In this document: piece by piece, positions 1 through 24,202 of the stretch
How positions within the stretch are numbered: the first letter of the stretch is position 1
Layout of the letters: every line of letters starts with the position of its first letter
Assembly (NCBI GenBank): GCA_002269645.1
Contig: NIVC01000554.1
Coordinates: 165,491 to 229,490, forward strand
Length of the DNA stretch: 64,000 nucleotides
Direction: 5' to 3'
Origin: Macrostomum lignano
Lineage: Eukaryota
Made by a program: the position numbers and the translations under genes
The notes under the pieces: generated by a model
The model's database searches: none
The model's input: only the letters and a program-made list of their open reading frames with translations
Told to the model about the DNA's origin: nothing

Positions 1-255
1 GAAAGCCCGATATGTATCGAAAACAATAAGAAAGATGAGAGCCCGATACGTATCGAAAAAAATAAGAAAGATAAAAATCCCGATATGTATCGAAAACAAT
101 ATACCAAAGATAAGAGAACCCGATGTGTGTCGAAAACAGTAATTATGCCTGATATTTTTCGAAAACAATAAGCAAGCCCGATATGTATCGAACAGTACGA
201 AGGCCCGATATGTATCGAAATAAACAACAAACCGATATGTATCGAAAGCAATTAT
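1..255. repeat. Degenerate CCCGATATGTATCGAAAACAAT tandem repeat (XPO4 intron 4)
   Basis: About 6 variable-length copies visible. Confidence 0.8.
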
Positions 256-278
256 AACCAGCCTGATCAGGCGCTCAC

Positions 279-3200
279 CAGCGGGCTGGGCTCGGGCGCG
301 GTCCTCGCCAGCAGACAGGCCATCCGCATGACGGCGGCCACCAGCTGCAGCAGGCGATCAACCTGCTGACTGTGGCCGCCGCCGGCTCGGCCCTGGCCTT
401 GACAAGCCTCGCACAGAGCTCGGACACTCTCGGCCACATTGGCCGACTGGGCCAGCGACTCGGACATGAGGCTGCGTGGTACAAACGGCGCCGCCTCCTC
501 GGCGTCCGGTTCAACAATCACGTGACCAACAACCAGCAGCAGCCAGTGGGCATCCTCCGAGGCCGACCAGACGGCGGCAGCGGACGCCCCAGGCTGCTGA
601 ACTCCAGCCAGCAGTTCGGCGCGCTGATCCAGCGCCTCGGCCAAAGCGCTAAGCGCGAACGCCGGCGCCCGGCGCGCAAATTCGCCAGCAGCGGCCAGAG
701 CGGAAGCGAATCGAACCTGGTCCGTCTCCTCCAGCTCGTGCACCGATTCGTCGTCGTCCGCTTCAGTCGCCTGTCGCTGCTGCATCGCCGCCAGGCCGCG
801 GAATCCGTCAGGCGGCGCCAGGCGGGAGCGCATCAGGGCGGCGAACAGCGTCTGGGCGATTGGGCCGACTGTTGAGGCGGCCGACGCTTCCGTCGAGGAG
901 GCTGCGGAGGCCAGGTCCGCTGCGCTGCCAGCTGGGGCAGGATTTAAGGGCGGATATACACTGGGGATCATTCAGAGCTGGTTTAAAACTGCCTAGAAAG
1001 TATTACCTAATTGCCTGATTGACAGGTTGACCCGGAGCACTATCCTAATTGCAGCGTACTCAAACCTACACCAGCCTACTTAAACCCACACCAGCCTACT
1101 CAAACCCACACCAGCCTACTTAAACCCACACCAGCCTACTCAAACCCACACCAGCCTACTTAAACCCACACCAGCCTACTCAAACCCACACCAGCCTACT
1201 TAAACCCACACCAGCCTACTCAAACCCACACCAGCCTACTCAAACCATCTACGCCGATCTACCCAGCAGCTCACAGTAAATCCCCACTCACAATCGAACG
1301 GTCCACCGGAAGAGTCGGCAGCGAACAGATGCGCCCAGGCGTCCAGCAGGCTGTCCGCCGCTTCGGACACCCCGGCGCTGGCGTCAGCAGCTCCGCTAGC
1401 CGACGAGGCGGAGGCGGCAGCTTCCAAGGCTCTGACGGTGAGCTCGGCAGCTTGGCTAGCCAGTGCAGCCGGCAGCCGGTCCAACGAGCTGCAACAGCCG
1501 CCGCTGTGCTGGCACAGGTTGGCGAACACATTGGCAAAGCCGGTGAGCTCCGGGCCGCCGGCAGCCGGCAGCCCCTGCTGCAGCGCCGCGGAGTACAGAC
1601 TGGCCAAGCTGGTGAAGTGCGCCTCCTTGGCCGTGTGATTGGCGAACACGCCGGGGCCGCTGAGCGACGCCAGCTGGCTGATGCAGGCCAGACAGAGTCT
1701 GACCAGCTCGTGGCTGATGTTCAATTGCTGTTGCTGCTCCTGCTGTTGCTGCTGCTGCTGCAGGTGCTGGCGAAGGTTGGTGAGCAGGTCGAATAGGGCT
1801 GGTAGAAGGCCGGAATCGAGCAGCACAGTGCGCCAGTTATCGTTAGGGCGTAGAATACCGGCTGGACCGGACTGCGGGCGGGTGAGGAAGTAAATTTGTG
1901 ATTAATTTGAGTGATTGAGTTATTGATTCTCTAATTAAGTGATTGATTGATTGACTGACTGATTGATTGATTGACTGACTGATTGATTAATTGATTGATT
2001 GACTGATTGATTGACTGAGTGATTGATTAACTGGTTGATTGACTGATTGATTGACTGAGTGATTGATTGATTGATTGATTGATTGATGGTGTAATATATT
2101 GATTGATCAATTGACAGATTATTAGTGAGAAATACTGACTGAGTGACTGGTTGATAAACACATTGGCAACCAAAGCGAGCCAACGGCGCACACTCATGTT
2201 ACCTGCAATCCAGCCAGCCGCCTCGGCAGCCTCTTAGGCAGGAAATCCCAGCTAAGCGCGCACTCCATTGCCTGCAGCAGCGGCAGCAGCAGATCGGCAT
2301 TAGAAGCAACAAACTCTGAGCTAGTAGCCGACGCCGCGGCGCAGCGAACGCACAGCACGAAGGCTCTCAACAGGCCGGCCTCCTCGAACTGGCGCCTCCG
2401 CTTGACGTGCTCCTCCCAGGCCAGGCCGCACCTGCCCAGCTGGTATTCGTTTAGCAGGGCGCGAAGGCCGGCGCAGCCCAGCAACTGGGCGGCTCGATCC
2501 GAGTTTGGCTGGGTCAGCAGCTGCTCCATCTCGTCCACCATACGGCTGGGCGTGTCGCACAGCTTCGCCATGGTGCACACGGCCAGCAGCACCTTGGGAG
2601 AGACAGACAGTCGCGGAGTAAAGATTCAGTAAGGATGGGTTCGTCACTTGCACCCACATCAGCCAGCCGCACAGGTGACTGCCGCACACCCACCTACCCA
2701 GTACACCCCACGTGCCCAATCCCACACCCCACCTACCCAATCCCACACCCCACCTACCCAATCCCACGCCCCACCTATCCAATCCCACATCCACCTACCC
2801 AATCCCACACCCACCTACCCAGTACACCCCACGTGCCCAATCCCACACCCCACCTACCCAATCCTACACCCCACCTACCCAATCCCACGCCCCACCTATC
2901 CAATCCCACACCCACCTACCCAATCCCACACCCACCTACCCAATCCCACGCCCCACCTATCCAATCCCACACCCACCTACCCAATCCCACACCCACCTAC
3001 CCAATCCCACACCCCACCTACCCAATCCCATACCCCACCTACCCAATTCCACACCCCACCTACCCAATCCCACACCCTACCTACCCAATCCCACACCCCA
3101 CCTACCCAATCCCACACCCCACCTACAAAGTCCCACACCCCACCCGCCCATGCCACACCCCACCTACCCAATCCCACACCCCATCGGCATTTACCCAAAC

Positions 3201-3692
3201 CCACACCCCACCTACCCAATCCCACACCCCACCTACCTAATCCCACACCCCACCTACCCAATCCTACACCCCACCTACCCAATCCCACACCCCACCTACC
3301 CAATCCCACACCCCATCTACCAAATCCCACACCCCACCTACCCAATCCCACACCCCACCCGCCCATCCCACCTGCTCCCGCACGAAGACCGGCAGTTCGT
3401 GCCGCCTTTCTCCCAGCAGGTGCAGCAGCGACACCCTGAGCTGCTCCACGGCATCGGCAGGCAGGTCTCGCCACTCCCTCAGCAGAGCATGCCTCATCGT
3501 GCTAGCAGCCTCAAACATGAGCAGCGGATTAGCCGATGCAGCCAGCAGCCTGCGGCACAAATCGTAGGGCCGGGCAGCTCGCCGGAACTCCATGACGGTG
3601 TCGGTGGCGGACTGCCGCTCAGCCTGGCTGAGATGCGGCAGCTGCACCAGCTGAGTGGCCCGTTCCAATTCGGCAATTTGCAGTTCCATCAT
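279..3692 (-). CDS. XPO4: Exportin-4, 5' part. Exons 3692-3372, 2592-2203, 1871-1292, 931-279; continues beyond the left edge of the window
   Basis: Recognisable XPO4 motifs in order: LLREW..L....EQLR..LL, VREQ|VLLAV, LSWDFLP, LRPNDNWRTVLLDS, CISQLASLSGP, RLAPPDG, EEISELEE-like ELEETD, EDAHWLLLVVG. All four junctions are GT-AG with matching phases 0,0,1,0. Confidence 0.9.
1057..1246. repeat. 20-bp minisatellite CCAGCCTACT(T/C)AAACCCACA with strict T/C alternation (40-bp higher-order unit)
   Basis: Direct reading; XPO4 intron 3. Confidence 0.95.
1905..2155. repeat. (ATTG/ACTG)n microsatellite
   Basis: Direct reading; XPO4 intron 2. Confidence 0.9.
2680..3362. repeat. 21-bp minisatellite CCCACCTACCCAATCCCACAC
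   Basis: About 32 copies fill XPO4 intron 1. Confidence 0.95.
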
Positions 3693-4020
3693 GCTTTTTT
3701 ATTGTTTCCAAAATTTCTGCTTCGCGAGTTCTACGCAACTATTTTCAAGTCGTAGTCTCAATGAATTGAAATGATTCAACGATTCAATTGTTACAACACA
3801 ACCGCTGCCGCTGCTATCAAACTGCTAACCACCTCGTCTCGCACTGCAAATGACTGAAAGAATTATTTAAGAAAGAAATTATTATGCGGATTAGCTACTG
3901 ATTCGACTGAGTAGGATGCAGCAGAATAGAAAACACGAGCTAATTTTAACAGTTTTCAATTTATCAAACTTTATCAGTTCTGTATCTAAAATATTTGCAA
4001 GCCTCGCTATAAGCTTTTTC

Positions 4021-4520
4021 CTATATAGATTCCCTTATCTACATCCCCTTATCTAGATTCCCTTAATATACATTCCCCTTATCTAGATTCCCCTAATATA
4101 GATTCCCCTTATCTAGATTCCCCTAATATAGATTCCCCTTATCTAGATTCCCCTAATATAGATTCCCCTAATATAGATTCCCCTAATATAGATTCCCCTA
4201 ATATAGATTCCCCTTATCTAGATTCCCCTAATATAGATTCCCCTAATATAGATTCCCCTTATCTAGATTCCCCTAATATAGATTCCCCTAATATAGATTC
4301 CCATAATATAGATTCCCCTAATATAGATTCCCCTAATCTAGATTCCCCTTATCTAGATTCCTCCTAACTAGATTCCTATAACTAGATCTCCTTATTTAGA
4401 TTCCTCAATCTAAATTCTCCTTAACTAGATTCCTTTAAGTAGATTCCCTTATCTAGATTCCTCTTATCTAAATTCGCTTATCTAGATTTCCTATCTAGAC
4501 TCCTGTCATCTAGATTCTCC
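4021..4520. repeat. 15-bp minisatellite AGATTCCCCT(A/T)AT(A/C)T, degenerating rightwards
   Basis: Direct reading. Confidence 0.9.
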
Positions 4521-4899
4521 TATCAGACTATTTACACAATGTACTGCTACACATTTAAATAAAAATCTGTTCAAAAGCAGTATGCAATTTTTCAAATGTA
4601 CCAAGCAAATGATAGAATGAAACTGCTTGACTAAACAGGTCACATTAATGCTGTTGATATTATTATCATTATTATTGGTAAGAAAGCCACAAGCTAAACA
4701 GGGACATACAAGGGGATCTGTATGAAAATAGATAGATTAGCAAGCATTTTTGCTTTACTAAAATCAAGCAATCAGCAAGTTGGTAACGTTGCTAACAGTA
4801 TAAACATAATTTTAACTATTTTATCATACTAAAGCAAATTTAAGCTACTCCTCAAACTGCCTTAAGACTTCAAGACTTCGGCATTTTTCTCAAATAGTT

Positions 4900-5776
4900 A
4901 CACTCGAGTCTTCCGCACTCCCTAACACACTCGAGTCTTCCGCCCCCTCTCCCCTAACACACTCGAGTCTTCCGCCCCCACTCCCCTAACACACTCGAGT
5001 CTTCCGCCCCCACCCCTAACACACTCGAGTCTTCCGCCCCCTCTCCCCTAACACACTCGAGTCTTCCGCCCCCACTCCCCTAACACACTCGAGTCTTCCG
5101 CCCCCTCTCCCCTAACACACTCGAGTCTTCCGCCCCCTCTCCCCTAACACACTCGAGTCTTCCGCCCCCTCTCCCCTAACACACTCGAGTCTTCCGCCCC
5201 CACTCCCCTAACACACTCGAGTCTTCCGCCCCCACTCCCCTAACACACTCGAGTCTTCCGCCCCCTCTCCCCTAACACACTCGAGTCTTCCGCCCCCTCT
5301 CCCCTAACACACTCGAGTCTTCCGCCCCCACTCCCCTAACACACTCGAGTCTTCCGCCCCCTCTCCCCTAACACACTCGAGTCTTCCGCCCCCTCTCCCC
5401 TAACACACTCGAGTCTTCCGCCCCCACTCCCCTAACACACTCGAGTCTTCCGCCCCCACTCCCCTAACACACTCCAGTCTTCCGCCCCCTCTCCCCTAAC
5501 ACACTTGAGTCTTCCGCCCCCTCTCCCCTAACACACTCGAGTCTTCCGCCCCCACTCCCCTAACACACTCGAGTCTTCCGCCCCCACTCCCCTAACACAC
5601 TCGAGTCTTCCGCCCCCTCTCCCCTAACACACTCGAGTCTTCCGCCCCACTCCCCTAACACACTCGAGTCTTCCGCCCCCACTCCCCTAACACACTCGAG
5701 TCTTCCGCCCCCTCTCCCCTAACACACTCGAGTCTTCCGCCCCCACTCCCCTAACACACTCGAGTCTTCCGCCCCA
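4900..5776. repeat. 32-bp minisatellite ACACTCGAGTCTTCCGCCCCC(T/A)CTCCCCTAAC
   Basis: About 27 near-identical copies starting 3 nt after the TOM22 stop codon. Confidence 0.95.
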
Positions 5777-5778
5777 TC

Positions 5779-6219
5779 CTAAGCGTGAGCAAAAGCCGGC
5801 TGCCCCGCAGCGGACGCACTGGCCGGTCCCAGCATCATTTTCCGTTCATTCTCCAGCTCGGCCTCTTCAACTCCGACCCGTTCGCGTTCGATGATGAGCG
5901 GCAGCAGCGCGATGAGGCCGGTGGTGGTGGCCACCCAGGCTAGATTGCTGGCCTGTCGAAAGCTCCACAAAGTCAGCTGGAAGCTGCCGGACACCAGCCC
6001 GCTGGCCGCACTGCGCACCGGTTTTGGGAACATTTCGGCCAGGGCCAGAATTCTCTCGGCAACTGTCTCGTCTTCAAGTTTGTCCTCGTCATCAAGGACA
6101 TCTTCGATGGGTTTCTGCTGCTGTTGCTGAGGCTCTGAAGACATCGCGCCGCTGCCGCCTACCAGAGGGTACGCTGGTGGCGGCGGTCGGTCGCCATCGA
6201 AAGGTGCCAGGCCTGACAT
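5779..6219 (-). CDS. TOMM22: Mitochondrial import receptor subunit TOM22, 146 aa, single coding exon
   Basis: Acidic N-terminus, DETVAERILALAEMFP, TM segment AWVATTTGLIALLPLIIERER and C-terminal MMLGP are typical of Tom22. An acceptor CTGCAG lies 2 nt before the ATG. Confidence 0.92.
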   Translation of the reverse strand: MSGLAPFDGDRPPPPAYPLVGGSGAMSSEPQQQQQKPIEDVLDDEDKLEDETVAERILALAEMFPKPVRSAASGLVSGSFQLTLWSFRQASNLAWVATTTGLIALLPLIIERERVGVEEAELENERKMMLGPASASAAGQPAFAHA

Positions 6220-6314
6220 GACTGCAGATTACGGAGCATGCAATGCAGGTATTCTGTTGTTGAGAACTAATAATTGACTGATTGACTGCTAATCTGTTGC
6301 CTGAGTGAGACTGT

Positions 6315-6625
6315 GCATGACTCTACACCTGTGCTCTGAGTGAGACTCTGTAGGACTCTACACTTGTGCTCTGAGTGAGACTCTGCAGGACTCTACACCT
6401 GTGCTCTGAGTGAGACTCTGCAGGACTCTACACTTGTGCTCTGAGTGAGACTCTGTAGGACTCTACACTTGTGCTCTGAGTGAGACTCTGCAGGACTCTA
6501 CACCTGTGCTCTGAGTGAGACTCTGCAGGACTCTACACCTGTGCTCTGAGTGAGACTCTGCAGGACTCTACACCTGTGCTCTGAGTGAGACTCTGCAGGA
6601 CTCTACACCTGTGCTCTCAGTGAGA
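6315..6625. repeat. 35-bp minisatellite CTCTACACCTGTGCTCTGAGTGAGACTCTGCAGGA
   Basis: About 9 copies. Confidence 0.95.
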
Positions 6626-7162
6626 TTCTAATAAGTCAAAGAATTGTGAATAAACAAACAAAAGAGCAAAAGCTTTCTTTTATGATTCAATTAAAATCGC
6701 TTTTTAAAATTGATACAGCATATCAGAACATGGTTTGCGAGAGATTAAATTAAACCTATTTAACTGTTAAAGATAATTGCTAGACAAAATGACAAGAACT
6801 TTTCAATTGAACAGTGTAACAATTAAAACTTTTAACACACAGTAATGTATTGCTATACATTTTTGAGATGAATGCCAACAAGAAAGTATTATAACCATAA
6901 TTGAACAGAAAATTAATAAAAAAACAGCGAACTTATTTTCACAAGGACTTTGCCCAGTGACACAACAATACAGTTTGTAAAAATTGATTATTACATAAAG
7001 CAAAGTTCTGCGCGTTTCTCGAGACTTGCATACAGCTTTATAGTCGTCATATTACATCAATTTGTGAACTAGCATCGTCCAACTGCTGGAAACCATTCAA
7101 ATGTGGAATAATAAAGAAATGCTTGAAAATTTAATAAAGCTAAATAGACAGTTGGACAGAGA

Positions 7163-7757
<595 letters not shown>

Positions 7758-7760
7758 ACC

Positions 7761-10700: not shown

Positions 10701-12236
10701 GAAGAGCTGGGAGGCTGGCTGCATAGCAACTGAGGAGCTGGGAGGCTGGCTGCATAGCAACTGAGGAGCTGGGAGGCTGCATGGCATAGCAACTGAGGAG
10801 CTGGCAGGCTGGCTGCATAGCAACTGAGGAGCTGGGAGGCTGCATGGCATAGCAACTGAAGAGCTGGGAGGCTGGCTGCATAGCAACTGAGGAGCTGGGA
10901 GGCTGCATGGCTGCATAGCAACTGAGGATGTGGGAGGCTGTCTGCATAGCAACTGAGGAGCTGGGAGGCTGGCTCCATAGCAACTGAGGATCTGGGAGGC
11001 TGGCCGAAAAACGCTTCCTAGAATGTTGGGGGGCTGGTCAAGCAAACCCTTCTGACAAGTGCCGGATGCGTCTTAATAAGAGATCATCTAATCCAACACC
11101 TGCAGCATGCCAGGAAAATCGTACTAAGCAGTGAATTGTGGCTAGATGAGAAAATACTCACCGCTGCTGCAGCAGGCTCAGTACTGCTAGAGTCGGGGGC
11201 GGAATCCTTAGAAACCACGCTAGGCAGCTGCTGCTCAACGGAATTGGCCAATTCTGGGGTCTGATTGGATGCAGTTGTTGCGCTGTGCTCAACAATTGAG
11301 TCTTTATTTTTGTTGGCACTTTCAACAGAATCAGCTGCGGCAGTCTGGATTTCTGAAGTTGAAGCCAGATGTGCGGGAGGTGCCGGAGGCGGCGGCTGCT
11401 GTTCTTGCTGAGTTGGAGCGGCAGACGAAGTTGAGTTTCTGCTCTCTGGAAGAATTAATAAGTATGAATAACTAATCTTTAAATCTACCAGAATCTATAC
11501 GCTGACAATCTACCTGAATCTATACTGACAATCTACCTGAATCTATACTGACAATCTACCTGAATCTATACTGACAATCTACCTAAATCTATACTGACAA
11601 TCTACCTGAATCTATACTGACAATCTACCTGAATCTATACTGACAATCTACCTGAATCTATACTGACAATCTACCTGAATCTATACTGACAATCTACCTG
11701 AATCTATACTGACAATCTACCTGAATCTATACTGACAATCTACCTGAATCTATACTGACAATCTACCTGAATCTATACTGACAATCTACCTGAATCTATA
11801 CTGACAATCTACCTAAATCTATACTGACAATCTACCTGAATCTATACTGACAATCTACCTGAATCTATACTGACAATCTACCAGAATCTATACTGACAAT
11901 CTACCTAAATCTATACTGAAAATCTACCTGAATCTATACTGACAATTTACCCGAATCTACACTGACAATCTACCTAAATCTACGCTGACAATCTACCTGA
12001 ATCTACACTGACAATATACTCTAATCTACGCTGACAATCTACCTGAAGTCAACAGAAAGAAAAACAAAGATTTTCTTACCAGCAGGTTTCTCAGACAGAC
12101 TGGCGCTCGCATCGGGTTCCTCAGCTAACGTGAGCTCATCCTCAGCTTCATCTGGCAAGGAGAAAACAACGTCAGCATTGGCGGGGATTCCGCCATCGGC
12201 AGTTGATAAAGATTCGCTCGCGTCTGCATTTGACAT
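7761..12236 (-). CDS. PHF10: PHD finger protein 10 (BAF45a/SAYP-like). Exons 12236-12080, 11445-11162, about 9629-9108, 8210-7761
   Basis: SAY-domain C-terminal motifs [19 protein letters not shown] and [11 protein letters not shown]. Tandem PHD fingers (CSEC...GHAACL...WQCMDCKRC...[18 protein letters not shown]...W.CPVC). Splice phases are consistent (1,0,0); the exon-3 acceptor could be 6 nt further 3'. Confidence 0.85.
8335..8995. repeat. GA-rich low-complexity repeat (PHF10 last intron)
   Basis: Direct reading. Confidence 0.9.
9688..11003. repeat. 31-bp minisatellite GCTGGGAGGCTGGCTGCATAGCAACTGAGGA with 32/35-bp variants
   Basis: About 41 copies in PHF10 intron 2. Confidence 0.95.
11483..12045. 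repeat. 23-bp minisatellite ATCTATACTGACAATCTACCTGA
   Basis: About 24 copies in PHF10 intron 1. Confidence 0.95.
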
Positions 12237-12389
12237 AGCTATAGCTGTATGATTTGACCGGGAATGTACAGCTGCTTATTAATAACTGAAACAGTAATGT
12301 GTAAGGTCTGTATAAATGATAAGTAACACTGATGAAATGATTGCTTGGCACCTGCCTCTCCCGTTGGAAAAGTTATGCACCTGCAGAGG

Positions 12390-12870
12390 CACAAAAGGTG
12401 AGCGAGGTGCACAAAAGAGGCACCTTGGTGGCCTATTTCGTGTGTGCTTTGGAAATGCACCTGAGTGCACCTTTTATGCCTAAATGTCACCAATATTTTT
12501 GAAAAGAGGCATGAAAGGTGTACAATCGGTGAAGTGGTCAGGCAGAAGGTGAATTCTCAATTTTGATTGGTTGCGGCGGTAGGGGCAGTAAAGGTGTACA
12601 AGGGGCACTGGAGGTGCGCAAAAGATGAAGAGTAGGCTCACAAGTGAGGCACAGCAGGTGCAGGAAAGGTGCTGAAGGGGCGCAGAAAGCGCATGAAAGG
12701 TGAATTAGAGGTGCATTTAAGGTGCATTTAAGGTGCATTTCAGGCACGAAAGGTGAATTAAAGGTGCATAAGGTGTACATGTGCGTAAATATGTATACAT
12801 GTGCATTTCCAAAACACGCTCGAAAGAGACCCCTAAAGTGCCTCTTCTGTGCACCTCGCTCACCTTCCAT
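12390..12870. mobile_element. Foldback/MITE-like element with imperfect inverted arms of about 70 bp
   Basis: 12395-12460 and 12801-12867 are imperfect reverse complements (AAGGTGAGCGAGGTGCACA.AAGAGGCAC...TTTGGAAATGCAC); the interior is rich in AAGGTG/TGCAC motifs. Confidence 0.55.
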
Positions 12871-13194
12871 GCCTATGCACGAATTAACGCATTAATAGTT
12901 TGTAACAAAATTAACTGAGAGTTACCTGGTACATACTCGTATATTGCACGCACAGATTGAACATAGAAAAGCTTTATTTACACCTATTCTAATCGCTGCT
13001 ATCCCCTTCCTACTCCTGACAAACCACGAAACTAAACATTTCCTATACTGATAAGTCTTAATGACTTTCAAATACTCAGGAAAAGTTCCGAAAAGTGATG
13101 AAAGGCTTGCATTAGTGAGGAAAAGTTTCCAATAGTGAGAAAAGGTAGCAAAAAACTTCGCCAGTTGAAACTTTAACGCCCCTTGCATTGCCTC

Positions 13195-13545
13195 TACGCC
13201 TAAAGTGCCCACTGTGCACCTTTTATTCACCTTTCGTGCCTCCAGTGCACACTGTACACCTTTTCTGCACCTCCACAGCAGCGCACCTTTTATTCACTTT
13301 TCACTCCCCCAATGCCCCCAATTACTACTTTATTCACCTTCTGTGCCTCAACGCACACTGTGCACCTTTTATGCACCTAACTCCCCAACGACACCTGTGC
13401 CCCTACCGCCTATTTCGTGCCTCAAATTCACCTTCCGCCCCTGCAGAGGCACTCAGGTGAACAAAAGGTGCACAAGTGGCACAAAATAGGCATAAGAGAG
13501 GCGAAAGTCAGGCAGAAGGTGCAAAACTCTTCACCTTTCATGCTT
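13195..13545. mobile_element. Second copy or relative of the AAAGGTGCAC foldback element
   Basis: Starts CCTAAAGTGCC as at about 12832; reiterated CACCTTTT/TGCAC motifs switch strand near 13450. Confidence 0.4.
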
Positions 13546-13569
13546 ACTTTAAAAACTCAAAATCCAACG

Positions 13570-13790
13570 GGTCTCCGCTCCATCAAGATTCTTGCACCTG
13601 CCTCTCCGCTCCATCAAGATGCTTTGAACCTGCCTCTCCGCTCTCCATCAAGATGCTTTGAACCTGCCTCTCCGCTCTCCATCAAGATACTTTGAACCTG
13701 CCTCTCCGCTCTCCATCAAGATGCTTGAACCTGCCTCTCCGCTCTCCATCAAGATACTTTGAACCTGCCTCTCCGCTCCATCAAGATCCT
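13570..13790. repeat. 32-34-bp minisatellite GAACCTGCCTCTCCGCTCTCCATCAAGATGCTTT
   Basis: About 7 copies. Confidence 0.9.
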
Positions 13791-14002
13791 TGATTGGCCT
13801 CTCAACTAACACTATATCCATACATCGGTACAATACTAAAGAGACGCAGAATAGATGCTGGTATTAGAATTAAAAAAACGCAAACCCGAGTTTCACAATC
13901 ATGTATTTTGCTACTGGTAAATCAATTAAGAAAAATGCAAAAAACCCGGCAATTTAGTCTCGGTGCAGCAGACACACACAGTTCGGAATGCGCAAGCAAC
14001 AT

Positions 14003-15099
14003 TCACTGATTAACATTCTGGGCAAACAGCTCCAGCTGCCGCTTATCCGCAGGACTTGGCGCCAAGTCAAATGCCGTCTTCTCCTCTTTGTTGATGTGGC
14101 CGACATTGGCACCGGCTTCAATCAGCAGTCGGGCATCTTCTAGACGGCCCTCTTCGCAGGCGAAGTGCAGCGGCGTGTTGCCGACAGAGTCGCTGACGTT
14201 GACAGGCGCTCCGCGGCTTAGAAGAAGGCTGGTCACCGCAGTGTGGCCCTGGGTGCGGGATGGTCAAATGGATTGATTTGAGTAGCTTGTGATTTTATGT
14301 GGAATTTTCCATCCCAGCTTAACAAAAATACTTTGGAATTTTCCACTTGACCTTCATTCGAAATACTATGGAATTTTCTACTTGACCTTCATTGAAATAC
14401 TGTAGAATTTTCCACTTGACCTTCATTGAAATACTATGGAATTTTCCACTTGACTTTCATTGAAATACTGTGGAATTTTCCACTTGACCTTCATTGTAAT
14501 ACTATGGAATTTTCCACTTGACCTTCATTGAAATACTGTGGAATTTTCCACTTGACCTTCATTGTAATACTATGGAATTTTCCACTTGACCTTCATTGAA
14601 AAGCTGTGGAATTACATACCTGCGCGCAGCTTCTATGCAACGGCGTCACCCCGGAAGTGGCATCCCGCGGCCCAGCGTCGGCCCCGGCGTCGAGCAGCAG
14701 CCGGGCGAGTTCCGGTCGATTCTTTGAAGCCGCGTAGTGCAAAGCTCGCTGCCCAGTAGCATTAGAAGCGTCCGGATTGGCCCCGGCGCCTAGCAACCGC
14801 CTAGCAACGGCTAGGTGACCAGCCGAAGCGGCCAGCATCAGCGGCGTCCAATCCTGATCGTCTGTCGAGTCGACAGTCTCCGGACTGCCAGCAGTCAGCG
14901 CCAGTTCCACAATACGCTCAGCGCCTTTAACGCAGGCCCAGTGCAATAGGCCACGGCCTGAGGAGTCCCGGCTGCTCGTTAGCAGCTCAGGCTGAGCAGT
15001 TTTAGCCTGCTCAACTAGCTTTGTGCACAGCTCTAACTGGCCATTGTGTAGCAGTTGAACAGCCTGCTCTAGATTGGCTAGTGATTGGCTGACAGACAT
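14003..15099 (-). CDS. PSMD10: Gankyrin / 26S proteasome non-ATPase regulatory subunit 10. Exons 15099-14620 and 14248-14003, 241 aa
   Basis: Ankyrin repeats with gankyrin-type motifs LLHWAC, WTPLMLAASAG, ALHYAASKNR, TPLHR...|GH, GNTPLHFACEE and NKEEKTA. Phase-0 GT-AG intron. Confidence 0.9.
14300..14600. repeat. 34-bp minisatellite TGGAATTTTCCACTTGACCTTCATTGAAATACTA
   Basis: About 8 copies fill the PSMD10 intron. Confidence 0.95.
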
Positions 15100-15189
15100 T
15101 TTTCTCTGTTCCAGCTTAATATTTCAAGCTTGTAAACATCAAAGCACAAGAGCACACTACCGACAATAAATTCAACCATGTAGTGTATA

Positions 15190-15240
15190 CCCTAACCTAA
15201 CCTTGAAACCTAACCTAACCCTGAACCCTTACCCTTAACT
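15190..15240. repeat. Degenerate telomere-like (CCTAA/CCCTAA)n tract
   Basis: CCCTAACCTAACCTTGAAACCTAACCTAACCCTGAACCCTTACCCTTAAC. Confidence 0.7.
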
Positions 15241-15652
15241 ATTAAAACAATGGCTATTACAATGCTAGGGTTATTAAAATGACAATACTATTACAAGCCA
15301 AAAAGACAAATATTAAAGTGATAGTAGTATTAAAAGGACATTAGTATTAAAATGACTGCAATCATAGATAGCAAAATTCAATTTGGCTAACTTAATAAGC
15401 AAGAGAAATAGAATGCATAAATACCATTTTAGACCATATTCTAAATTTGTGTTTTTGTTAATTCATGAACAGTTTTCTCATTTTTATTGCTTGTTTTCTT
15501 GGCTACATCGGAAATTAGCATTGTTAATGCCTATTATTACTTTTATAATAGGCATTTGAAATATTATAAAAGCTAATTTTCATTAGGTAAATGAACAATT
15601 ATTATTAAAGTTACTATTTGTGCTAGAAAATTTGGTGAAATCTACCACCTTT

Positions 15653-17151
15653 CCATACTCAGGAAGGTGTACATCATGGCGGAAAATTCCGGTATACATC
15701 AATGAAAAATATGCGCGAAGTGGCGCACACGGCGCACAACAAAGGCTTAGCAGAAGTTTTTAGTGCATAGTGGCGCACAGCAAAACCAGATCAGTCACCT
15801 AAATATATAATCTGTATATGCAGTGCGTAAAATATGCTTTAAGATTACGTTTTTTCCAAGCATATGTGGTAGTAGGCTGGTCTACCACTGGGGTGAGCAA
15901 TGGCAGGCTTCCAGTGCGGACAACGGCGGAACATTCGGCTCAATTCCATAGAATGATGGACTAACATCATTTTTTTATTTTTTGCTCCCTTGTTTGTTCC
16001 CCCGGTTGTCCCCGCCTTTGCTCCCTCATCTGTTCCTTTTTCTGTTCCCTCCCTTGGCCCCTGTTGTTTTAGTGTTTCCAGTGGCCGGGTTTCTTTGTTT
16101 CCCATTGTTGTCCCTTCCCTTGTCCCACCCCTGGGATCCCCCACGCTAATTTTATATATTTACGTTGATTTTGGAGTCTCTAATTCTCATCTCCCCTGTT
16201 GGTTGTTTGTCAGTTTGTTCCATTTTTTTATTTCCGGTCTTTGTTCATTTATCTCGCGTAGCTCTAATAATTAATGGTAATAATAATAACAAAATAATAA
16301 TAAGTTCGCAAATATCAATAATATTTATTCAGTTGTTCAGAATCGAAGCCTTTCGTTTTCTATTGAGTCATTTGCCCGCAGGGCGTAAAATAACCAGTCA
16401 GTCTCAACTCAAAGAAAGCTTTGAGACCCTCAATGTTCCGTAAAACGACATTTACAGTGGTGGCAGCGCTACTTTACTACTGAGAGTAACACAACTAGCA
16501 ATCTTGATGAATTACGAGTTCACAGTGTCTAAGGACCCCTCCTGAATGACTCAGGCTGCTACTAGACTGCTCGACTGCAATTACAACTATCCTCCCCCGG
16601 AATTGAGGACCCGGCAGACGGAATAACCAAGGAGAAGAATTAGCGCATCAATTCGTGCATTTTTCCGGCTTTATTTGCGCTTCTATAATGCCAGTGGCAA
16701 TTCAAAGAGGAATCCACCCCACCTCACTGGTGTCAGCAAATTTTCGAAACCGAGAGTTTCCAAGAAAATTCTTCTCCACCCCCACCTCACATATCAATAA
16801 AAAATTGTTTCTTAGTAAGTGAAATGAATAATAAAATTCAAAATGGGATTCTACCATAAAGTTAAAGCTATTTCTTTTGAGAATTTTCTACATGAGCTAA
16901 AATAAAGCAAAAGTTTTGAGTTGAAAAAAAGGCTACATAAGGTACGAAAATTTATCCGTTTTTTTAGTTTTGTTTTAATTGGACTTTTACCGAGTTTTTA
17001 GTGCTACAGCGCATTAGTTAGCTATGTATTTGTCAATGAACGAATGTAGACCTCGGCGTACAGATTCATATTTTAGCTTTGCACACAGCGCACACTTAAA
17101 AAATACACTGAAATATATTCCTGCGCACACGTAACACCTTCCTGAGTGTGG
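15653..17151. mobile_element. Non-autonomous TIR DNA element, about 1.5 kb
   Basis: 18-bp TIRs CCA(T/C)ACTCAGGAAGGTGT; flanks CCACCTTT and CCACCTTC (7/8 TSD); no coding capacity seen. Confidence 0.7.
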
Positions 17152-17280
17152 CCACCTTCCTAACTATGGGGTAAGGGGGGGGGATTTTAATGCCCCTGAT
17201 CTGGAATGAGCAACAGTTTTCTGCATATGACTATTTGTCATATTTGATACACTTTCCTACAGCTATAGCCAGCTTTAGTT

Positions 17281-17845
17281 CCATAGTTAGGATCATGTCA
17301 TGGTATACGCCAGAATAAAAAGTCCCATAAAAAAATCTATGCCACTTCATACTGAAATGTACGCCAAGGTTCTAGGAACTTACACCAGGTTTTCTAGGCT
17401 TTGCGACAATAAATGATTTTTTTGCATATTACACATTTTTTAACAATAAAAATTTAACAAATGTGTGGTTTTCATTTAAAGTAAATTGGCTTACAGATAA
17501 TGCCAACAAAAATCAATTTTTTGTTTAAGTTTTTTAGAAAATTAACATGATTAGTTTGCATGGAATTTTAAATTTTTATAAATCACGAATAGATTTATGA
17601 ACTTTTATCTTATGAGTTTTATAGTTTGAATCATTTTATAATAAGATTCTGAGGTTATGGCATTATGCCAAAAGTTGTTAATATTAACTTTGGCATGAAG
17701 GTTGGAGTTGGTATACGCTGCTTGGCATATTTACACCACGGCGTCATGCCAAAAAGTACGCCAAATATATTTTGCCTCATTTTTTATGCCAATTGTACGC
17801 CAAAAAAAGTAAAATTTTCATCATCATCTATCATCCTGACTATGG
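17281..17845. mobile_element. MITE, 565 bp
   Basis: TIRs CCATAGT(T/C)AGGAT; perfect 8-bp TSD CTTTAGTT (17273-17280 and 17846-17853). Confidence 0.8.
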
Positions 17846-19683
17846 CTTTAGTTCCTAATCATTTTAATAAGAAACATACATTTTGATAATTGTAAACCAA
17901 AGGTGATATCAACTAAAACAATATTACTATCATTTAAAAAAAACAGCGCTTTTGTCTTCAACAATTATTTTAAATGGTGATCGTCACTGTTTGAGGTGAT
18001 TGTAAACCAAAGGAATGCCAAACTAGGCTTATTATTATCTATTTATACATTTAGAGCTGTGGCCATCCTGGTGTATGGCCTGGCCATCTTGGTCATATAT
18101 ACTCATATGCTACTAAAAGTAAAACTAGGCCTAGGCCTATGAACTATCTATCCCAATCCCACTTATTTTAAATTGTCAAAAATTGTTTTAAAAATTTTGC
18201 TTTCAAGAAAAAATTTGAGGAAAAAAAACAAATCATTTTAGGGTTTTCTGATTTTGTGACTTGCATGACTCAAAATGAAAAAATTAATAATAAAATAAAG
18301 TTTAAATTCTTAAACAGACAATTAAAACAATTTCTTAACCTAATTTTTTGTCCTATTGAATCTATTCCATTTTTTAATCCTCATTTTACCGCCTGGTATC
18401 TATATTACATTATTAGTATCATATGATCAGATCACTAACACAGCTAATCACTAGGCCTAGGCTAAAGCTAAACTGATTTTTTTAACTGAACATTATACAA
18501 ATTAACATACCAATAACGCACGCAGTTAAGGCCATAACTTATAGGACACGCCGGCCATGCCTAGTAATATAGGCCTAATCCTTCTCTCTAATATCGACTA
18601 GGTGATAGGTATGTCAGTCCACACATACTGGTGGCCGCCATCAGTACCAGGACTCACCAATAAAAAACAGTTCACCTATTTGAATACGATCATTTTCCTT
18701 GAAAATCAAGAAAGTATATCAAATTGTATTTTTCAGGCTTAATTTATATTTATATTTTTTTACTATCAACTAAGTCTAAAAAAGAAAGCATTTCTAAATA
18801 ATTTTGTCCTTGGGAGACTTTCTGGTTCATCGCCTGTAAAACGAGCTAGGGCAAATGCCTGCACATTTAGAACTTAAAGAGAATTCAGATTGCCAAGTCA
18901 GAAAAAGTCTCAAAAAAGAAGTGGCTTAACTTAATTAAGTTAGTTATAGATGCAGGGGGCTGGGTGCATCCTAGTGCACTTTATGTGGCATTAATTAACA
19001 AAGCCAGCGAAAGGTAACTACTTATTTACTGCCAATTTCCACCGACACGCCCCTGTACAGGCAACATGCAATAGCGCGGATTACAAAACGTCCGTATGTA
19101 ATATACGCAGGCAGCATACACAGGAGCGAGCAGCTGCCGTAATTTAATTTATCGTAAGGTATTTAAATTGCCTTGTGACTGGCGGGGACGTTGGCCCAGA
19201 ATGCAAGGGGTGTTATAATTTAGCAGACCATCCGGCAAGTCGTGATTTCAATTTTGTACATGTAAATAAATGTAGTTCCAAATTAACTGTACTTGGAATC
19301 AAGCCTTGCATGGGCAGCTGGCACATAAGAGCGCCGCGCTACAGACACAGGCTACGGACAGACCTATACAACATGTACATTTAAAAATAGTTTTAAAATG
19401 CTACCATATGTACGACAGCTAGCTGGTAAATGCACGTGTAACACATATGTAATGCACTACATTCGATTCCATATAAATTTCCAACTACGTCGACTATTAC
19501 TGTAGCCTTAAACGCAAGTATGCATGTAACATATTACCGGTGGGTAGCAGTGTGCACATGTAATAAATGCATGCCAGGCCACACGTACATAATCCAGCTA
19601 TTTTTGCGAATCTATAAAAAGTATCGAGATTCGCGCTCGTAATTGCAGCTATTCATGTATAGCACATGTACATGTATATTTTG

Positions 19684-20652
19684 CAAGGACTACTTAAGAA
19701 CACAGGACGTTACACTTGCAAATATTGGCAGAATTCTAAAAGGCCGCTTTGAATGCATGTGTCTATGGTTTTAGTGGCCTTTTTGCTATTTGAAGCAATG
19801 TGTATAATACATGAATAGAAATTTTTGCCTAGTGAATAAAGCTTTTTATATGCATGTATACCGACAAAATATTTATATTTTCTCCAAAAGGTGATCGTGA
19901 ACAGGGTGTAGAAGTTTAACAAAAAACGAAGAAATACCCAAAAATAACAAGAATGACAATATTGAATGATAGGAACTACACTTGGTCAACAATAATAATA
20001 CTTATTCGCTCATTTCCCGATTCATGGACTTGTTTAAAATGTAGAAGCAACACGATGGTAGCAAAGATGACAGTGAAAATAGTAATAAATTCGTCACAAA
20101 GTTAATCGGAGTTTAATTTTCGTAACCGTCTTGCACCAACACCGCTTTGATGTCTCTCAGTTTCAGATTCCTTTCTTACTAAACCCTTGTAAAAGGAATT
20201 TGCAAACCGGCGAGATATTCTTATAAGTAGCTCGTTGCCAAGTGCAATATCCAAAAAAGAGTCGAAAATTCTCAGAAACACATTAACTGAACTGTTAACG
20301 CAACGCTGTCCGGAGCCGAGAAAGAAGACGTAGCAGAAACTAGCATACACAACAAGCCATTCTGGCGGATGACTCAATTTTCCGCGAGACACCAACTTTG
20401 TGAACTCACAGCTGTTGTCTGTAGCATATGCCTCGGTGCTTTTCCCGGACAAATTTTCCTTGTACGAGACATAACCGCATATATAGTAAATAGAAGCTTT
20501 CTCTTCATCAGAGAGTTCAGCGGCAGACCGGTACACATTGCTTCAAATAGCAAAAAGGCCACTAAAACCATAGACACATGCATTCAAAGCGGCCTTTTAG
20601 AATTCTGCCAATATTTGCAAGTGTAACGTCCTGTGTTCTTAAGTAGTCCTTG
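19684..20652 (-). mobile_element. Non-autonomous P-element (THAP9-type) deletion derivative, 969 bp
   Basis: Perfect 121-bp TIRs (19684-19804 and 20532-20652) starting CAAGG. Perfect 8-bp TSD ATATTTTG (19676-19683 and 20653-20660). Internal ORF remnant 20536-20102 (IYYICGYV, LVSRGKLSHP, RRFANSFYKG) resembles a P-transposase C-terminus. Confidence 0.85.
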
Positions 20653-21312
20653 ATATTTTGTTGCTACTTTCTACTAAGCACTACATTACAGTTAAATCAC
20701 GTCACGTGCTGTATTATACTAGCACAAAAGTACTTATGCAAATTGCATCTTCTAGTAGAAATTCTTCTCTAAAGAGAGACACGAAAGAAGTCCTTCTGTA
20801 GAAAAAAACTCATACTGCAGCTTCGGTTTCAAAAAGCAAACAACCATGCAAATTTTATTTCATATTTGCTTTTACAGGCTCCAAGTTACATATGTAAAGA
20901 AACGTACACCCGCTGAGAATACAAATAAAAGGGGAACATTGCCTAAAGAAACGTACACCACAGCCTAAAAAAATAGCTTACATGTACACGAGGCTTGCTT
21001 GCTACAATATCTGGGAGCTGAGCTACAGGGTCGGGTTTGTCTAAACCCTCTTTGTTAGTACTCCACTTATCTTTAATTTGTTTAGCTCAAACTATACAAA
21101 CATCCACACGTCAGCTCCGTCAAATATTATTGACTTACATTTGCAATTGCGTATACCTAGCTCAGCACGCCCTCTAAAAATCCAACGCATTGCATTTTAA
21201 TCGGCTTCTAATTGAATACTGTAGGTAATGCTGCTTCATACATATATCTGATTCTGAAATTCTGATACCCCCAACAAACAATGGAAACAAAAAAGGTCGA
21301 CGCCTTGGTTTA

Positions 21313-23620
21313 CTACTCAAATAAGTCGTCCTCCTGGCCTCGATTATAAAACTGAACATCGCCATCAGCGCCGCCCGCAACGGCATCTTCTGAGGCGCTG
21401 CCACCAGCGCTGTTGCTAAGGAGCGCATCCAGGTGTCTTCTTCGAATCAGCCTTCCAACGTTGATCTCAGCCGGGTCCCAGCCGTCCTCGAGTCGCTGAC
21501 GAGTCTCCAGCTCGGCGTTAAGCTGGCGAATCTGCTGCTCCCGCTGCTGCTTCTGCAGCTGCAGTTGGCGCGGCGCCGCAGCCTCTCGCGCAGCGGAAAT
21601 ATGCCGCAACAGGCTGGCACCGGCGCAGACCCAAGAGTTTAGCGACGCAACTGCCTCGGCCGTTTGCGGATTGGCGCCGCGTAGATCCAGAGCGCTCAGC
21701 CGGCGCTCCAATTGACGGATTGTCGACGGTGAGCAGCCGGGACTAGTCATTGAGTAGTCGTGACCGTCGCTGCTGTCTCTCGCCCTACCGCTGCCGCCGA
21801 CACCACTGCCGGGTCCACTAACGACGCCGTCGCCGTAGTCGGACGCGCTGCTGCTGTTCAGTTCTTTCACAACACTGACGTCGCTCGTGTACATGCTCTG
21901 CTGCTGGCTGTGCAGCTGCTGGTTCCTCTGCTCGTGCTTCGGTTGGCTCTGCTTGCCAGCAGTGCGATTCCGACGACTGCCAATTTTTATTAATGGTTGA
22001 GTATGCGCGCATTCATGATTGACACTGAGCCTGCCTGCTGGTAACTTAATAAATAACATTTTAATATTGAATGCTTCATGTAAAATAGGTTGTGTGCATT
22101 GAATACTTCCGAAAAAATGCAGACATCTTTTTAACCGTTCTTAAGAGGCAAATTAAAATATGTCTGCGCCATCACAGATAAAATCGGCTCTTAGACTCGC
22201 TAATTGTCATTTATTTTATGCCTCAAGCGTAATAAGGCTGTCACGTTTTTGGCATGTCCACGAGCACATTTGAAAATACCCCCACGGAATTCTATCATTC
22301 AAGGAGCATGTCATGTAAAGGTCATACAGTCAAGGTATCGAACTGTCCTTCACGATTTCCGGATGTATCAATGTCCTCAAATTAAGTTCGAGATAGATAA
22401 ATCTTAAATTCATCAAACAAGTTGTCACAGTTGTTCTGCCGACTGACCTAGCGGTTCTTACCATATGCAAGTGCTTGCGTGTTATACTCTTCTAGAGTGG
22501 TCACAGACGAGTATTCTCTTTATTTGAGCATCGAGACCAACCCCGAGAAAGCCATTGCATTCAGATTACTAGAAAAATGCTAAATGCAATCTTGCAACTC
22601 ACGACAGACTTGTTGAGTGCGGATATCCACTGCTCAAGCGGCCGCCGCCTCGTGAACGGCCCCGAGCTGTAGATCCGCTCACAACGGCAGACCGCGCACT
22701 GCCGCGCAGTCTGGATGATTCACCGCCAACCCGGCGAGGCAGCGGCTGCGGCTGCGGCGGTCGCTTTGCCGTTTCCAGGAGGCGCATAGTTCTAGCCTGA
22801 TTGGCGGCCAACTTGCTGCAGGAGATTGCCTGATTGCCGGTGAAAGTCAGGCGCACATTTTTGCACAGGTCCTGCATTTTAGATTAGACATCGGATTCAC
22901 TTGACTTTTCATCGATGTGTATGTAGTTATATTAGTGAAAGCTAACAAATCTTAAATTTCAGCCGGTTGATTAGTTTTGAAGTTTTTAAAAATTTGTAAA
23001 AGCCGCGCGATCAGCACACACCACACAAGCTAGAATGTACTCACTTGATGGTGGGGGGTACGTGTCGAGTGCTATGTATGCGGATGTGTTCCATAGGTCT
23101 GTGAGTGTAGATATACAAAAATTCTACAATCTTGACTTTTGCTCACATAGCTGACGGCATAAGGATTTGTGGTCCCGACAGAAATGTCTCGGTGAGGCAA
23201 CTGGACATTAAAGCCTACATCATTAGCATAGAAACTATTTGGCATCAATTAGGAGGCGCAAACCTGATAGGCAATTGACTCGCCCCCGTCTCCTCCAGAG
23301 TCAGCTCGGCCGGCTGAGTCGCCCTGTTGAATGCGTTCCATGATGCGCCGCTCCTCGGCAGACAGCGAACGAAGCCGACGGCCAACATCGGCGTCCCCAG
23401 TCAGGGCAGTCCGCCGCCGACGCAGTTGCGCACCACGGCTGCCGCTGCCACCAGTGACTCTGCCGAGCGTCAGTTGAAGCTTCTGCGTGCTGCCACTAGC
23501 GGCCGAGTCACCTGAACTTGCTACTAATCTACGACTGGTGTTGTAAACTGAGGCTGGCACTTTCATGTCGCGAATGCGCAGCGGATCATCCACCGCGGTT
23601 GCCGCAGCTGATTTTCGCAT
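21313..23620 (-). CDS. Hypothetical protein, about 429 aa, low-complexity and coiled-coil-like. Exons 23620-23264, 22871-22603, about 21976-21313
   Basis: Three GC-rich ORF blocks in AT-rich surroundings join in frame through GT-AG junctions of phase 0 and 2. No family recognised. Confidence 0.6.
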
Positions 23621-24202
23621 TTGGACCTTCGATAAATATTATACAAAAAAACCGTTTGAGGCCGAGTATAAATGTTTCATCTCGTTCTCGACACTGAAAT
23701 TTGAATGCCAATGCACGGGAGGGCGAACACTACCATAGAATAACTCATCTCAAGCACGAGCTGCTTAGCGATCGAATAAAAATTATACAATGATTAAAAG
23801 TTTTCATCAGCATCTATACTATATGACAAGACTATGGGAAATATCTTCCACTCGGAAGCTTTTAAAGTATTGAAGTTTAATTCAACTAACAGGTGTGTCG
23901 CAATAGCTCGTACTCTATCTGGTGAAACTTTGCTTCCTCCCATGGCTGTTGCAATTAATGAGCCATCTGTCGACTAAGGATTCTAGCTAACTCTCCAAAC
24001 TAATTAGACGTACCGAAGTACGGTGCTTGTTTTAAACACGTTTGAATACTGACTGTCTTGAAGGTCTTAAAATAGAACAAAAGAAAAAGTGCAGATCACT
24101 TGGCTGTTTTTATTCCAACAAGGCTGTAACGCTCGCAACTGCGGAGGCTTTCTAGAATAATAGGATTCTGACCTACCATTCAAAAGTTTTAGGCTCAAGT
24201 AC

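Follow-up and report, generated by a model that had tools for sequence, protein, structure and literature searches.

In the free-living flatworm Macrostomum lignano, the genes PSMD10, PHF10, TOM22 and XPO4 are probably expressed as one operon-like transcription unit that is resolved into single mRNAs by spliced leader (SL) trans-splicing. The genes follow one another on the minus strand in the last 64 kb of the 229,490-bp scaffold NIVC01000554.1 (hereafter the window), which was placed in assembly GCA_002269645.1 of M. lignano (Mlig_3_7) by look-up of the TOM22 protein; NIVC accessions denote the Mlig_3_7 genome (Wudarski et al. 2017, PMC5730564), and positions on the record are 165,490 plus the window coordinate. 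A sequence-only reading of the window had proposed a polycistronic SL unit of five genes with repeat-inflated spacers. This proposal stands for the four genes named above, which are tied together by locus tags and by spacers of less than 1 kb after repeats are subtracted, but not for the fifth, an orphan gene that lies upstream of PSMD10 and is most plausibly separate.

The deposited annotation contains exactly the five consecutive minus-strand genes that had been described, with no gene in between on either strand, and the same-strand adjacency is not interrupted by an opposite-strand gene. Gene content, order and strand are, in this respect, directly observed. The four genes are conserved housekeeping genes, a class that is enriched among the trans-spliced genes of M. 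lignano. The PSMD10-like protein aligns end-to-end with human gankyrin (E = 5.5e-44), and the top match of the PHF10-like protein in the PDB is PHF10 (E = 7.5e-33), with DPF2/3 eleven orders of magnitude worse. Brute-force enumeration of GT-AG introns returns hundreds of gene-model solutions because the minisatellites are open in several frames; the models were settled by (i) splice sites shared among paralogues together with exact matches to deposited proteins and (ii) tblastn. The spliced PSMD10 and PHF10 models match the deposited proteins letter for letter and, thus, the coding sequences (CDSs) start at the ATGs given in Table 1. The earlier finding that no coding exon lies upstream of the ATGs is upheld by the spliced models, which agree with the deposited proteins, whereas coordinate 279, which had been taken as the end of the cluster, is not a gene end: XPO4 extends past the start of the window, with about 667 residues of its 1214-amino acid (aa) CDS inside.

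Evidence for a shared precursor comes from the transcriptional units (TUs) of the deposited annotation and from three copies of the locus. The locus is present three times in the assembly, colinear and at 91-98% nucleotide identity, spacers included. The copies compared are (i) the window copy (window 1-25100), (ii) a sister copy (L003/L005, NIVC01000554.1:13373-52139) and (iii) a third copy (L002, NIVC01000230.1:695224-715670), and gene order and strand are the same in both further copies. The window and sister copies form a tail-to-tail inverted duplication on the same scaffold, about 110 kb apart; the triplicated locus may reflect the known genome or large-chromosome duplication of line DV1, or homeologues that were joined in scaffolding. 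GenBank locus tags take the form BOX15_Mlig, a unit number, the letter g and a gene number, in which the unit is an RNA-seq TU. The TUs were built from RNA-seq and then cut into genes at mapped SL and poly(A) sites by the TBONE pipeline (Wudarski et al., PMC5730564). In the sister copy, PSMD10, PHF10, TOM22 and XPO4 are Mlig026922g1, g2, g3 and g4. In the third copy, PSMD10, PHF10 and TOM22 are Mlig002079g1-g3 and XPO4 is Mlig008392g1. In the window copy, PSMD10 and PHF10 are Mlig024207g1 and Mlig024207g2, XPO4 is Mlig028063g1, and TOM22 is very probably g3 of Mlig024207, as suggested by the accession run PAA81009-81013; TOM22 is g3 in both paralogous copies (Mlig002079g3 and Mlig026922g3). 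PSMD10 is gene 1 of its TU in all three copies, and the orphan carries other prefixes (Mlig024932g2 in the window copy, Mlig024932g1 in the sister copy and Mlig022633g1 in the third). As deposited, and with window TOM22 assigned by its accession, the assembled precursor holds four genes in the sister copy and three in each of the others, and one assembled TU spans the genes except that XPO4 and the orphan of the window copy stand under other prefixes.

A tag prefix stands for one TU or for a cluster of TUs at 95% identity, and it is because of this clustering that two orphan loci share a prefix. A prefix shared through clustering only, with no shared transcript, was considered and rejected for the operon genes, as unrelated sequences cannot cluster at 95%. 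Unrelated neighbours that share a prefix are therefore spanned by one assembled transcript. TUs break at repeat-rich operon spacers according to the authors (PMC8629364), which accounts for XPO4 standing in its own TU in two copies. An older gene model points to the same linkage: UniRef A0A1I8FKK1, a 960-aa 'PHD finger protein 10' from the older ML2 assembly, fuses the last exon of PHF10 to TOM22 and XPO4 (window 8138-228). Chimeric gene models of this kind were taken as a trace of polycistronic RNA in parasitic flatworms in a 2025 study (PMC12582326).

The anatomy of the spacers is observed in the sequence and agrees with earlier estimates of 1.8, 1.5 and 1.9 kb from stop to acceptor, or about 0.5-0.6 kb without repeats (Table 1). 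The repeat-adjusted distance is below 1 kb for PSMD10-PHF10, PHF10-TOM22 and TOM22-XPO4 alike. From stop to ATG, the non-tandem remainder in the three copies is about 316-340 nt for PSMD10-PHF10 (transposon removed in the window copy), 576-633 nt for PHF10-TOM22 and 706-710 nt for TOM22-XPO4. In all three copies this unique remainder is constant, whereas the repeats differ in copy number by up to 15-fold, with 85-248 copies of (GACA)n, 17.6-27.6 of a 32-bp unit and about 6.5-49 of a 34-bp unit. The 34-bp minisatellite (13572-13793) is represented by 3.3 copies of a 67-bp double unit in the window and by 49 unit copies in L003, and (GACA)n at 7165-7743 has 146 copies in the window and 85 and 248 in the paralogues. 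The TOM22-XPO4 spacer holds 34 copies of a 15-bp minisatellite (4022-4521) and 26.8 copies of a G-rich 32-bp minisatellite (GGGGAGTGGGGGCGGAAGACTCGAGTGTGTTA, 4920-5775, minus strand). The latter begins 3 nt past the TOM22 stop and must either lie in the TOM22 3' untranslated region (UTR) or be transcribed in the precursor. The G-runs of this minisatellite could form G-quadruplexes. Minisatellite load is not special to the spacers; in the PHF10 introns, minisatellites make up about 82%.

The PSMD10-PHF10 spacer of the window copy is further enlarged by a 1210-bp non-autonomous DNA transposon that has internal inverted repeats and an empty site in both paralogues. All four minus-strand AATAAA hexamers of this spacer lie within the copy-specific transposon, where they might cause early polyadenylation of a read-through precursor. 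The PHF10-TOM22 spacer has no canonical poly(A) hexamer except ATTAAA at 7135. For TOM22-XPO4, the reported absence of a minus-strand AATAAA is confirmed up to the XPO4 acceptor, and the AGTAAA variant noted near 4754 is found at 4759.

Candidate acceptors were compared to the enriched trans-splice acceptor motif [T/C]TNCAG. An AG shortly before each ATG, which the sequence-only reading had offered as evidence, is at chance level (median gap 9 nt over 859 minus-strand ATGs; Fisher combined p 0.09-0.11). With the full motif the combined p is 0.04 over the four genes, and only TOM22 is striking: a motif as close as that of TOM22 (CTGCAG, TC, ATG) is found at 0.9% of minus-strand ATGs. The operon could not have been established from sequence alone. 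In XPO4, two tandem motifs are located about 150-160 nt upstream of the ATG after a pyrimidine-rich tract, and the 2.1-kb spacer has no other [T/C]TNCAG match. The '-2' site of PHF10 is a TAG (12241-12239), and the nearest motif match is TTTCAG (G at 12286), 49 nt upstream; the '-6' site of the orphan is a poor AAG, with TTTCAG 73 nt upstream. The 3' end of the SL is matched over 8 nt (ATTGCATG) at a site 18 nt before the TOM22 acceptor; this match was dismissed as chance (4 in the window versus 2.9 expected).

Some of the deposited CDSs are 5'-partial, such that the annotated mRNA 5' end is fixed within three bases. The 5'-partial PSMD10 CDS of L002 (YKLEIISWNREKM...) begins immediately behind gctTTGCAG, 36-38 nt ahead of the ATG. 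The deposited TOM22 CDS is likewise 5'-partial ('AVM' or 'VM') and begins at 6225 in the window copy; its 5' end is at most 8 nt from the ATG, at aatCTGCAG/tcATG (slash, junction), and 1-6 nt upstream of the junction. Thus, the 5' UTRs are very short (TOM22, at most 8 nt; PSMD10, at most 38 nt). The PHF10 5' end of L003 ('SNHTAM...') is 15-17 nt upstream of the ATG, is not placed after an AG and is 21-26 nt downstream of AATAAG, a hexamer that, speculatively, may mark the PSMD10 poly(A) site. As indirect evidence for SL trans-splicing, these 5' ends and the nearby motifs give a mixed picture. If the TOM22 and PHF10 acceptors 2 nt before the ATG (6217-6227 and 12234-12241, minus strand) are used, the terminal AUG of the SL would lie out of frame, 5 nt upstream (AUGNNAUG), and generate an overlapping upstream reading frame; the L003 sequence differs there (CAG/CA-ATG), yet the 2-nt spacing is the same.

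A model can be proposed in which the assembled unit is taken to be the true precursor RNA and in which promoter position, exact acceptors and poly(A) sites are predicted. RNA polymerase II would start upstream of PSMD10, probably inside a stretch of about 450 nt that is conserved between the copies (15100-15550), and read through all four genes. Single-gene mRNAs would be released from the precursor by two processes: each upstream gene would be cleaved and polyadenylated at its 3' end, and a single 35-nt SL would be trans-spliced to an acceptor a short distance before each downstream ATG. Most of the kb-scale spacer sequence would be neutral minisatellite and transposon load, as in the introns of these genes, and each spacer would keep a unique core of 0.3-0.6 kb. 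The 15100-15550 block is the most likely location of the outron and promoter of the unit. A telomere-like (TTAGG/TTAGGG) repeat is located in this block at 15191-15233 (minus strand), about 100-130 nt upstream of the PSMD10 ATG.

Several findings weigh against a four-gene unit or qualify it. TU membership is read here from locus tags, and in the window copy XPO4 sits in a separate TU. In TU assembly, each read was allowed as many as 1000 mappings, in a genome that is rich in repeats and holds three near-identical copies; thus, continuous coverage of the spacers could be partly artefactual. The three copies are recent duplicates within one genome (91-98% identity), and their colinearity therefore says little on conservation; in searches for orthologues in other flatworms, the TOM22 and orphan queries matched only M. 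lignano proteins and the chimeric query mostly generic ankyrin-repeat proteins. The ancestral parts of the spacers lack canonical poly(A) hexamers, and 0.3-0.6 kb of unique spacer DNA could leave room for internal promoters. The deposited 5' ends of TOM22 and L003 PHF10 do not lie exactly after an AG. The TTGCAG of PSMD10, apparently in use in L002 and intact in L003, is mutated in the aligned window copy, and the AG at 15130-15129 named by the sequence-only reading is merely the next AG downstream; the window-copy PSMD10 must use another AG (e.g., 15130-15129) or a different form of processing.

Certain of these findings would fit a three-gene operon (PSMD10-PHF10-TOM22) with XPO4 transcribed from its own promoter in the 1.9-kb spacer and still SL trans-spliced at 3844/3854. 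XPO4 is gene 1 of its own TU in two copies (Mlig028063g1, window; Mlig008392g1, third), it has the longest candidate 5' UTR (about 150 nt), and unique blocks of 377 and 174 nt are available in the spacer. This arrangement is nonetheless considered unlikely, as XPO4 shares the TU of the other three genes in the sister copy (Mlig026922g4), a separate XPO4 TU is expected where TUs break at repeat-rich spacers, the repeat-adjusted distance to TOM22 is 551 nt (<1 kb), and the older fused model joins the two genes. Slightly less likely still are four or five monocistronic genes arranged head-to-tail, for which the multi-gene TUs would be artefacts of read-through, multi-mapped repeats or paralogue cross-mapping and trans-splicing, if any, would serve the removal of single-gene outrons. 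About 60% of the trans-spliced genes of M. lignano are outside operons, and the raw spacers (1.5-1.9 kb), the chance-level AGs and the mapping of RNA-seq reads with 1000 multi-hits are compatible with such an arrangement. By contrast, unrelated genes under one TU prefix need a spanning transcript, and this is seen in three separate copies; the intervals that separate trans-spliced genes show a mode of their own at less than 1 kb once repeats are subtracted, with all three pairs inside it; and the 5' UTRs of TOM22 and PSMD10 are very short.

The four-gene unit must also be weighed against a five-gene unit of more than 27 kb, in which transcription would run from the orphan, or from a promoter shared with a neighbouring glycosyltransferase gene, through more than 6 kb of copy-specific transposon sequence into PSMD10. 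The orphan and PSMD10 are on the same strand and are direct neighbours in the annotation, a paralogous PSMD10 appears to be trans-spliced, so that the gene has an outron, and the plus-strand glycosyltransferase gene (open reading frame (ORF) 24633-25199), about 1 kb upstream of the orphan and divergent from it, would make the orphan the first minus-strand gene. The orphan is, however, in a different TU in all three copies, and PSMD10 is gene 1 each time. The gap had been described as 6.2 kb with at least 3 kb of transposons; it is indeed 6.2 kb here (8.4 kb in the sister copy) and holds at least 3.2 kb of copy-specific sequence, the 969-bp element of Table 1 included. Alignment of the two versions of the gap is limited to three blocks (21400-20653, 19683-17845 at 86%, and 15550-15000). 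About 2.9 kb is alignable and remains after adjustment, well above 1 kb, and the gap holds several minus-strand AATAAA and ATTAAA signals. Inclusion of the orphan in the operon is not supported, given its separate TU and a gap that is neither conserved nor below 1 kb once adjusted, and a five-gene unit is regarded as highly improbable. If true, it would mean that operons of this genome can absorb transposon insertions of several kb between their cistrons, in excess of the published limit of 1 kb after repeat adjustment. The orphan promoter is probably in the region of about 1 kb in which the orphan and the glycosyltransferase gene are head-to-head.

Table 1. Features of the PSMD10-PHF10-TOM22-XPO4 locus and its upstream region (window coordinates).
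Feature	Position	Strand	Details
XPO4 (exportin-4), 5' part	228..3692	-	Exons about 3692-3369, 2643-2203, 1874-1293, 944-228; ATG at 3692; tblastn; gene call with PF28490 XPO4; PAA81009.1, BOX15_Mlig028063g1
Two tandem XPO4 motifs	3844..3859	-	TTTCAG (G 3854) and TTGCAG (G 3844); identical in three copies
TOM22-to-XPO4 spacer	3845..5778	-	Stop to acceptor 1934 nt; tandem repeat 1356 nt (32-bp and 15-bp minisatellites); none else removed; unique 551 nt; unique blocks 4523-4899, 3845-4018
TOM22	5779..6219	-	Single exon, 146 aa from ATG; Pfam Tom22 4e-12
Candidate SL acceptor CTGCAG of TOM22	6222..6227	-	2 nt upstream of ATG; identical in three copies
PHF10-to-TOM22 spacer	6222..7760	-	Stop to acceptor 1539 nt; tandem repeat 908 nt ((GACA)n 7165-7743; 35-bp minisatellite 6301-6629); none else removed; unique 596 nt
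PHF10-like tandem-PHD gene, 470 aa	7761..12236	-	Exons 12236-12080, 11445-11162, 9629-9108, 8210-7761; exact deposited-protein match; Pfam PHD; PAA81011.1, BOX15_Mlig024207g2
PSMD10-to-PHF10 spacer, up to ATG	12237..14002	-	1766 nt; stop to acceptor 1764 nt; tandem repeat 222 nt; 1210-bp transposon; unique about 330 nt
1210-bp non-autonomous DNA transposon	12362..13571	-	Window copy only; terminal inverted repeats CCCGTTGG/CCAACGGG, AGA on both flanks
PSMD10 (gankyrin)-like, 241 aa	14003..15099	-	Exons 15099-14620, 14248-14003; PAA81012.1, BOX15_Mlig024207g1
PSMD10 5' splice region	15129..15139	-	Paralogue TTGCAG reads TTGATG (15139-15137, two substitutions)
Upstream block common to all copies	15100..15550	-	About 450 nt, 94-98% identity; only shared sequence upstream of PSMD10
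Rest of orphan-PSMD10 gap	15551..21312	-	15551-17844 without counterpart in other copies
969-bp element	19684-20652		Perfect 121-bp terminal inverted repeats; absent from sister copy (L005)
Orphan gene, 429 aa	21313..23620	-	Exons 23620-23264, 22871-22603, 21976-21313; PAA81013.1, BOX15_Mlig024932g2

The orphan has no match in Pfam and no homologue among 1.84 billion representative proteins. A UniRef protein identical to the orphan of the L005 copy, and 95% identical to that of the window, bears the label 'PEHE domain-containing'; despite this label, the L005 paralogue is without a homologue among the 1.84 billion representatives. Between the orphan and PSMD10, the alignment at the empty site of the 969-bp element in the sister copy has an 8-bp overlap, which suggests a target-site duplication and, together with the absence of the element from that copy, a very recent insertion. 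A 144-aa ORF inside this element (20102-20536) has no Pfam match. In the PSMD10 of L003, a 1-nt deletion in a G run (L003:2850-2852, homologous to window ~14666) changes GCCGCGGGATG to GCCGC-GGATG and cuts the deposited protein to 150 aa; either the paralogue is decaying or the assembly has a homopolymer error here.

Other features of the window include a fragment of a glycosyltransferase with a DXD motif (24633-25199, plus strand), divergent from the orphan, a TNFAIP8-like protein (34685-35359, plus strand; Pfam 3.6e-48) and an open exon of 1041 aa with cadherin repeats (39337-42462, minus strand; 5.7e-56). Scans of the window revealed no SL RNA gene, Rfam family or tRNA. A sigma-70 promoter and terminator scan of the window gave chance-level results and is irrelevant to a eukaryote.

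Operons of M. lignano are well described. About 30% of genes receive one 35-nt SL (CGGTCTCTTACTGCGAAGACTCAATTTATTGCATG) and about 15% are in operons, of which 75% have two genes, 18% have three and the largest has nine, with four-gene operons a listed class (PMC8629364). Repeats contribute substantially to the intergenic distances of these operons (Ustyantsev & Berezikov 2021, PMC8629364); once RepeatMasker and TRF intervals are subtracted, the distances are bimodal with a main peak near 100 bp, and an operon is defined by an adjusted distance of less than 1 kb. The suggestion that repeat-inflated spacers would hide the unit from operon callers is, thus, out of date, since repeats were subtracted in that study for this very reason. 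The unit described here comes from the same species and assembly as the published operons (PMC8629364; annotation, PMC5730564) and resembles them in its adjacent, same-strand conserved genes, in the predicted use of the single 35-nt SL and in candidate acceptors with the [T/C]TNCAG motif, in its repeat- and transposon-swollen spacers that collapse to less than 1 kb after subtraction, and in the splitting of TUs at repeat-rich spacers; it differs from them in nothing of kind. The published mode of about 100 bp is measured between transcripts, whereas the 0.3-0.6 kb given here is from stop to acceptor and includes 3' UTRs. The locus is not discussed in the searchable text of the papers, and its locus tags were not found there or in the supplements of Grudniewska et al. 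2018.

Similarly to the SL2-type operons of Caenorhabditis elegans, which have two to eight genes, the M. lignano unit would form a polycistronic precursor of unrelated housekeeping genes in which 3'-end formation is coupled to SL trans-splicing. By contrast, downstream genes of C. elegans receive a specialised SL2, and the intercistronic regions there measure about 100 nt and contain few repeats, whereas M. lignano uses one SL and the raw spacers here are 1.5-1.9 kb; the unit is not an SL2 operon of the C. elegans type but would work like an operon of another type. Tunicate operons (Ciona, Oikopleura) share the single SL type and the housekeeping enrichment and, unlike the locus described here, have little or no intercistronic sequence. 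The polycistrons of parasitic flatworms (Schistosoma, Echinococcus) are from the same phylum, use an SL that ends in AUG and have downstream genes resolved by the SL; there too, chimeric models betray polycistronic RNA, with intergenic distances of up to several kb in the chimeras (PMC12582326). Parasitic flatworms differ in the operon cut-offs applied (200-1000 bp; 300 bp in the 2025 study) and in having far fewer operon genes.

The locus was already public as annotation, and the principle had been published for the same species in 2021; the finding is real but ordinary: it adds little beyond confirmation and provides a clean textbook example of a phenomenon published for M. lignano. Operons of unrelated housekeeping genes survive a heavy load of minisatellites and transposons because they require no more than an acceptor, 3'-end signals and a few hundred bases of unique sequence. 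In repeat-rich genomes with trans-splicing, raw intergenic distance is a poor criterion for operons, and existing TU annotation should be consulted before clusters are called new. The three diverged copies may provide a small natural experiment on operon robustness, in which insertion and acceptor loss could be related to output: the window copy has a transposon of its own and a mutated acceptor, L003 has a frameshifted PSMD10, and the number of minisatellite units varies by up to 15-fold.

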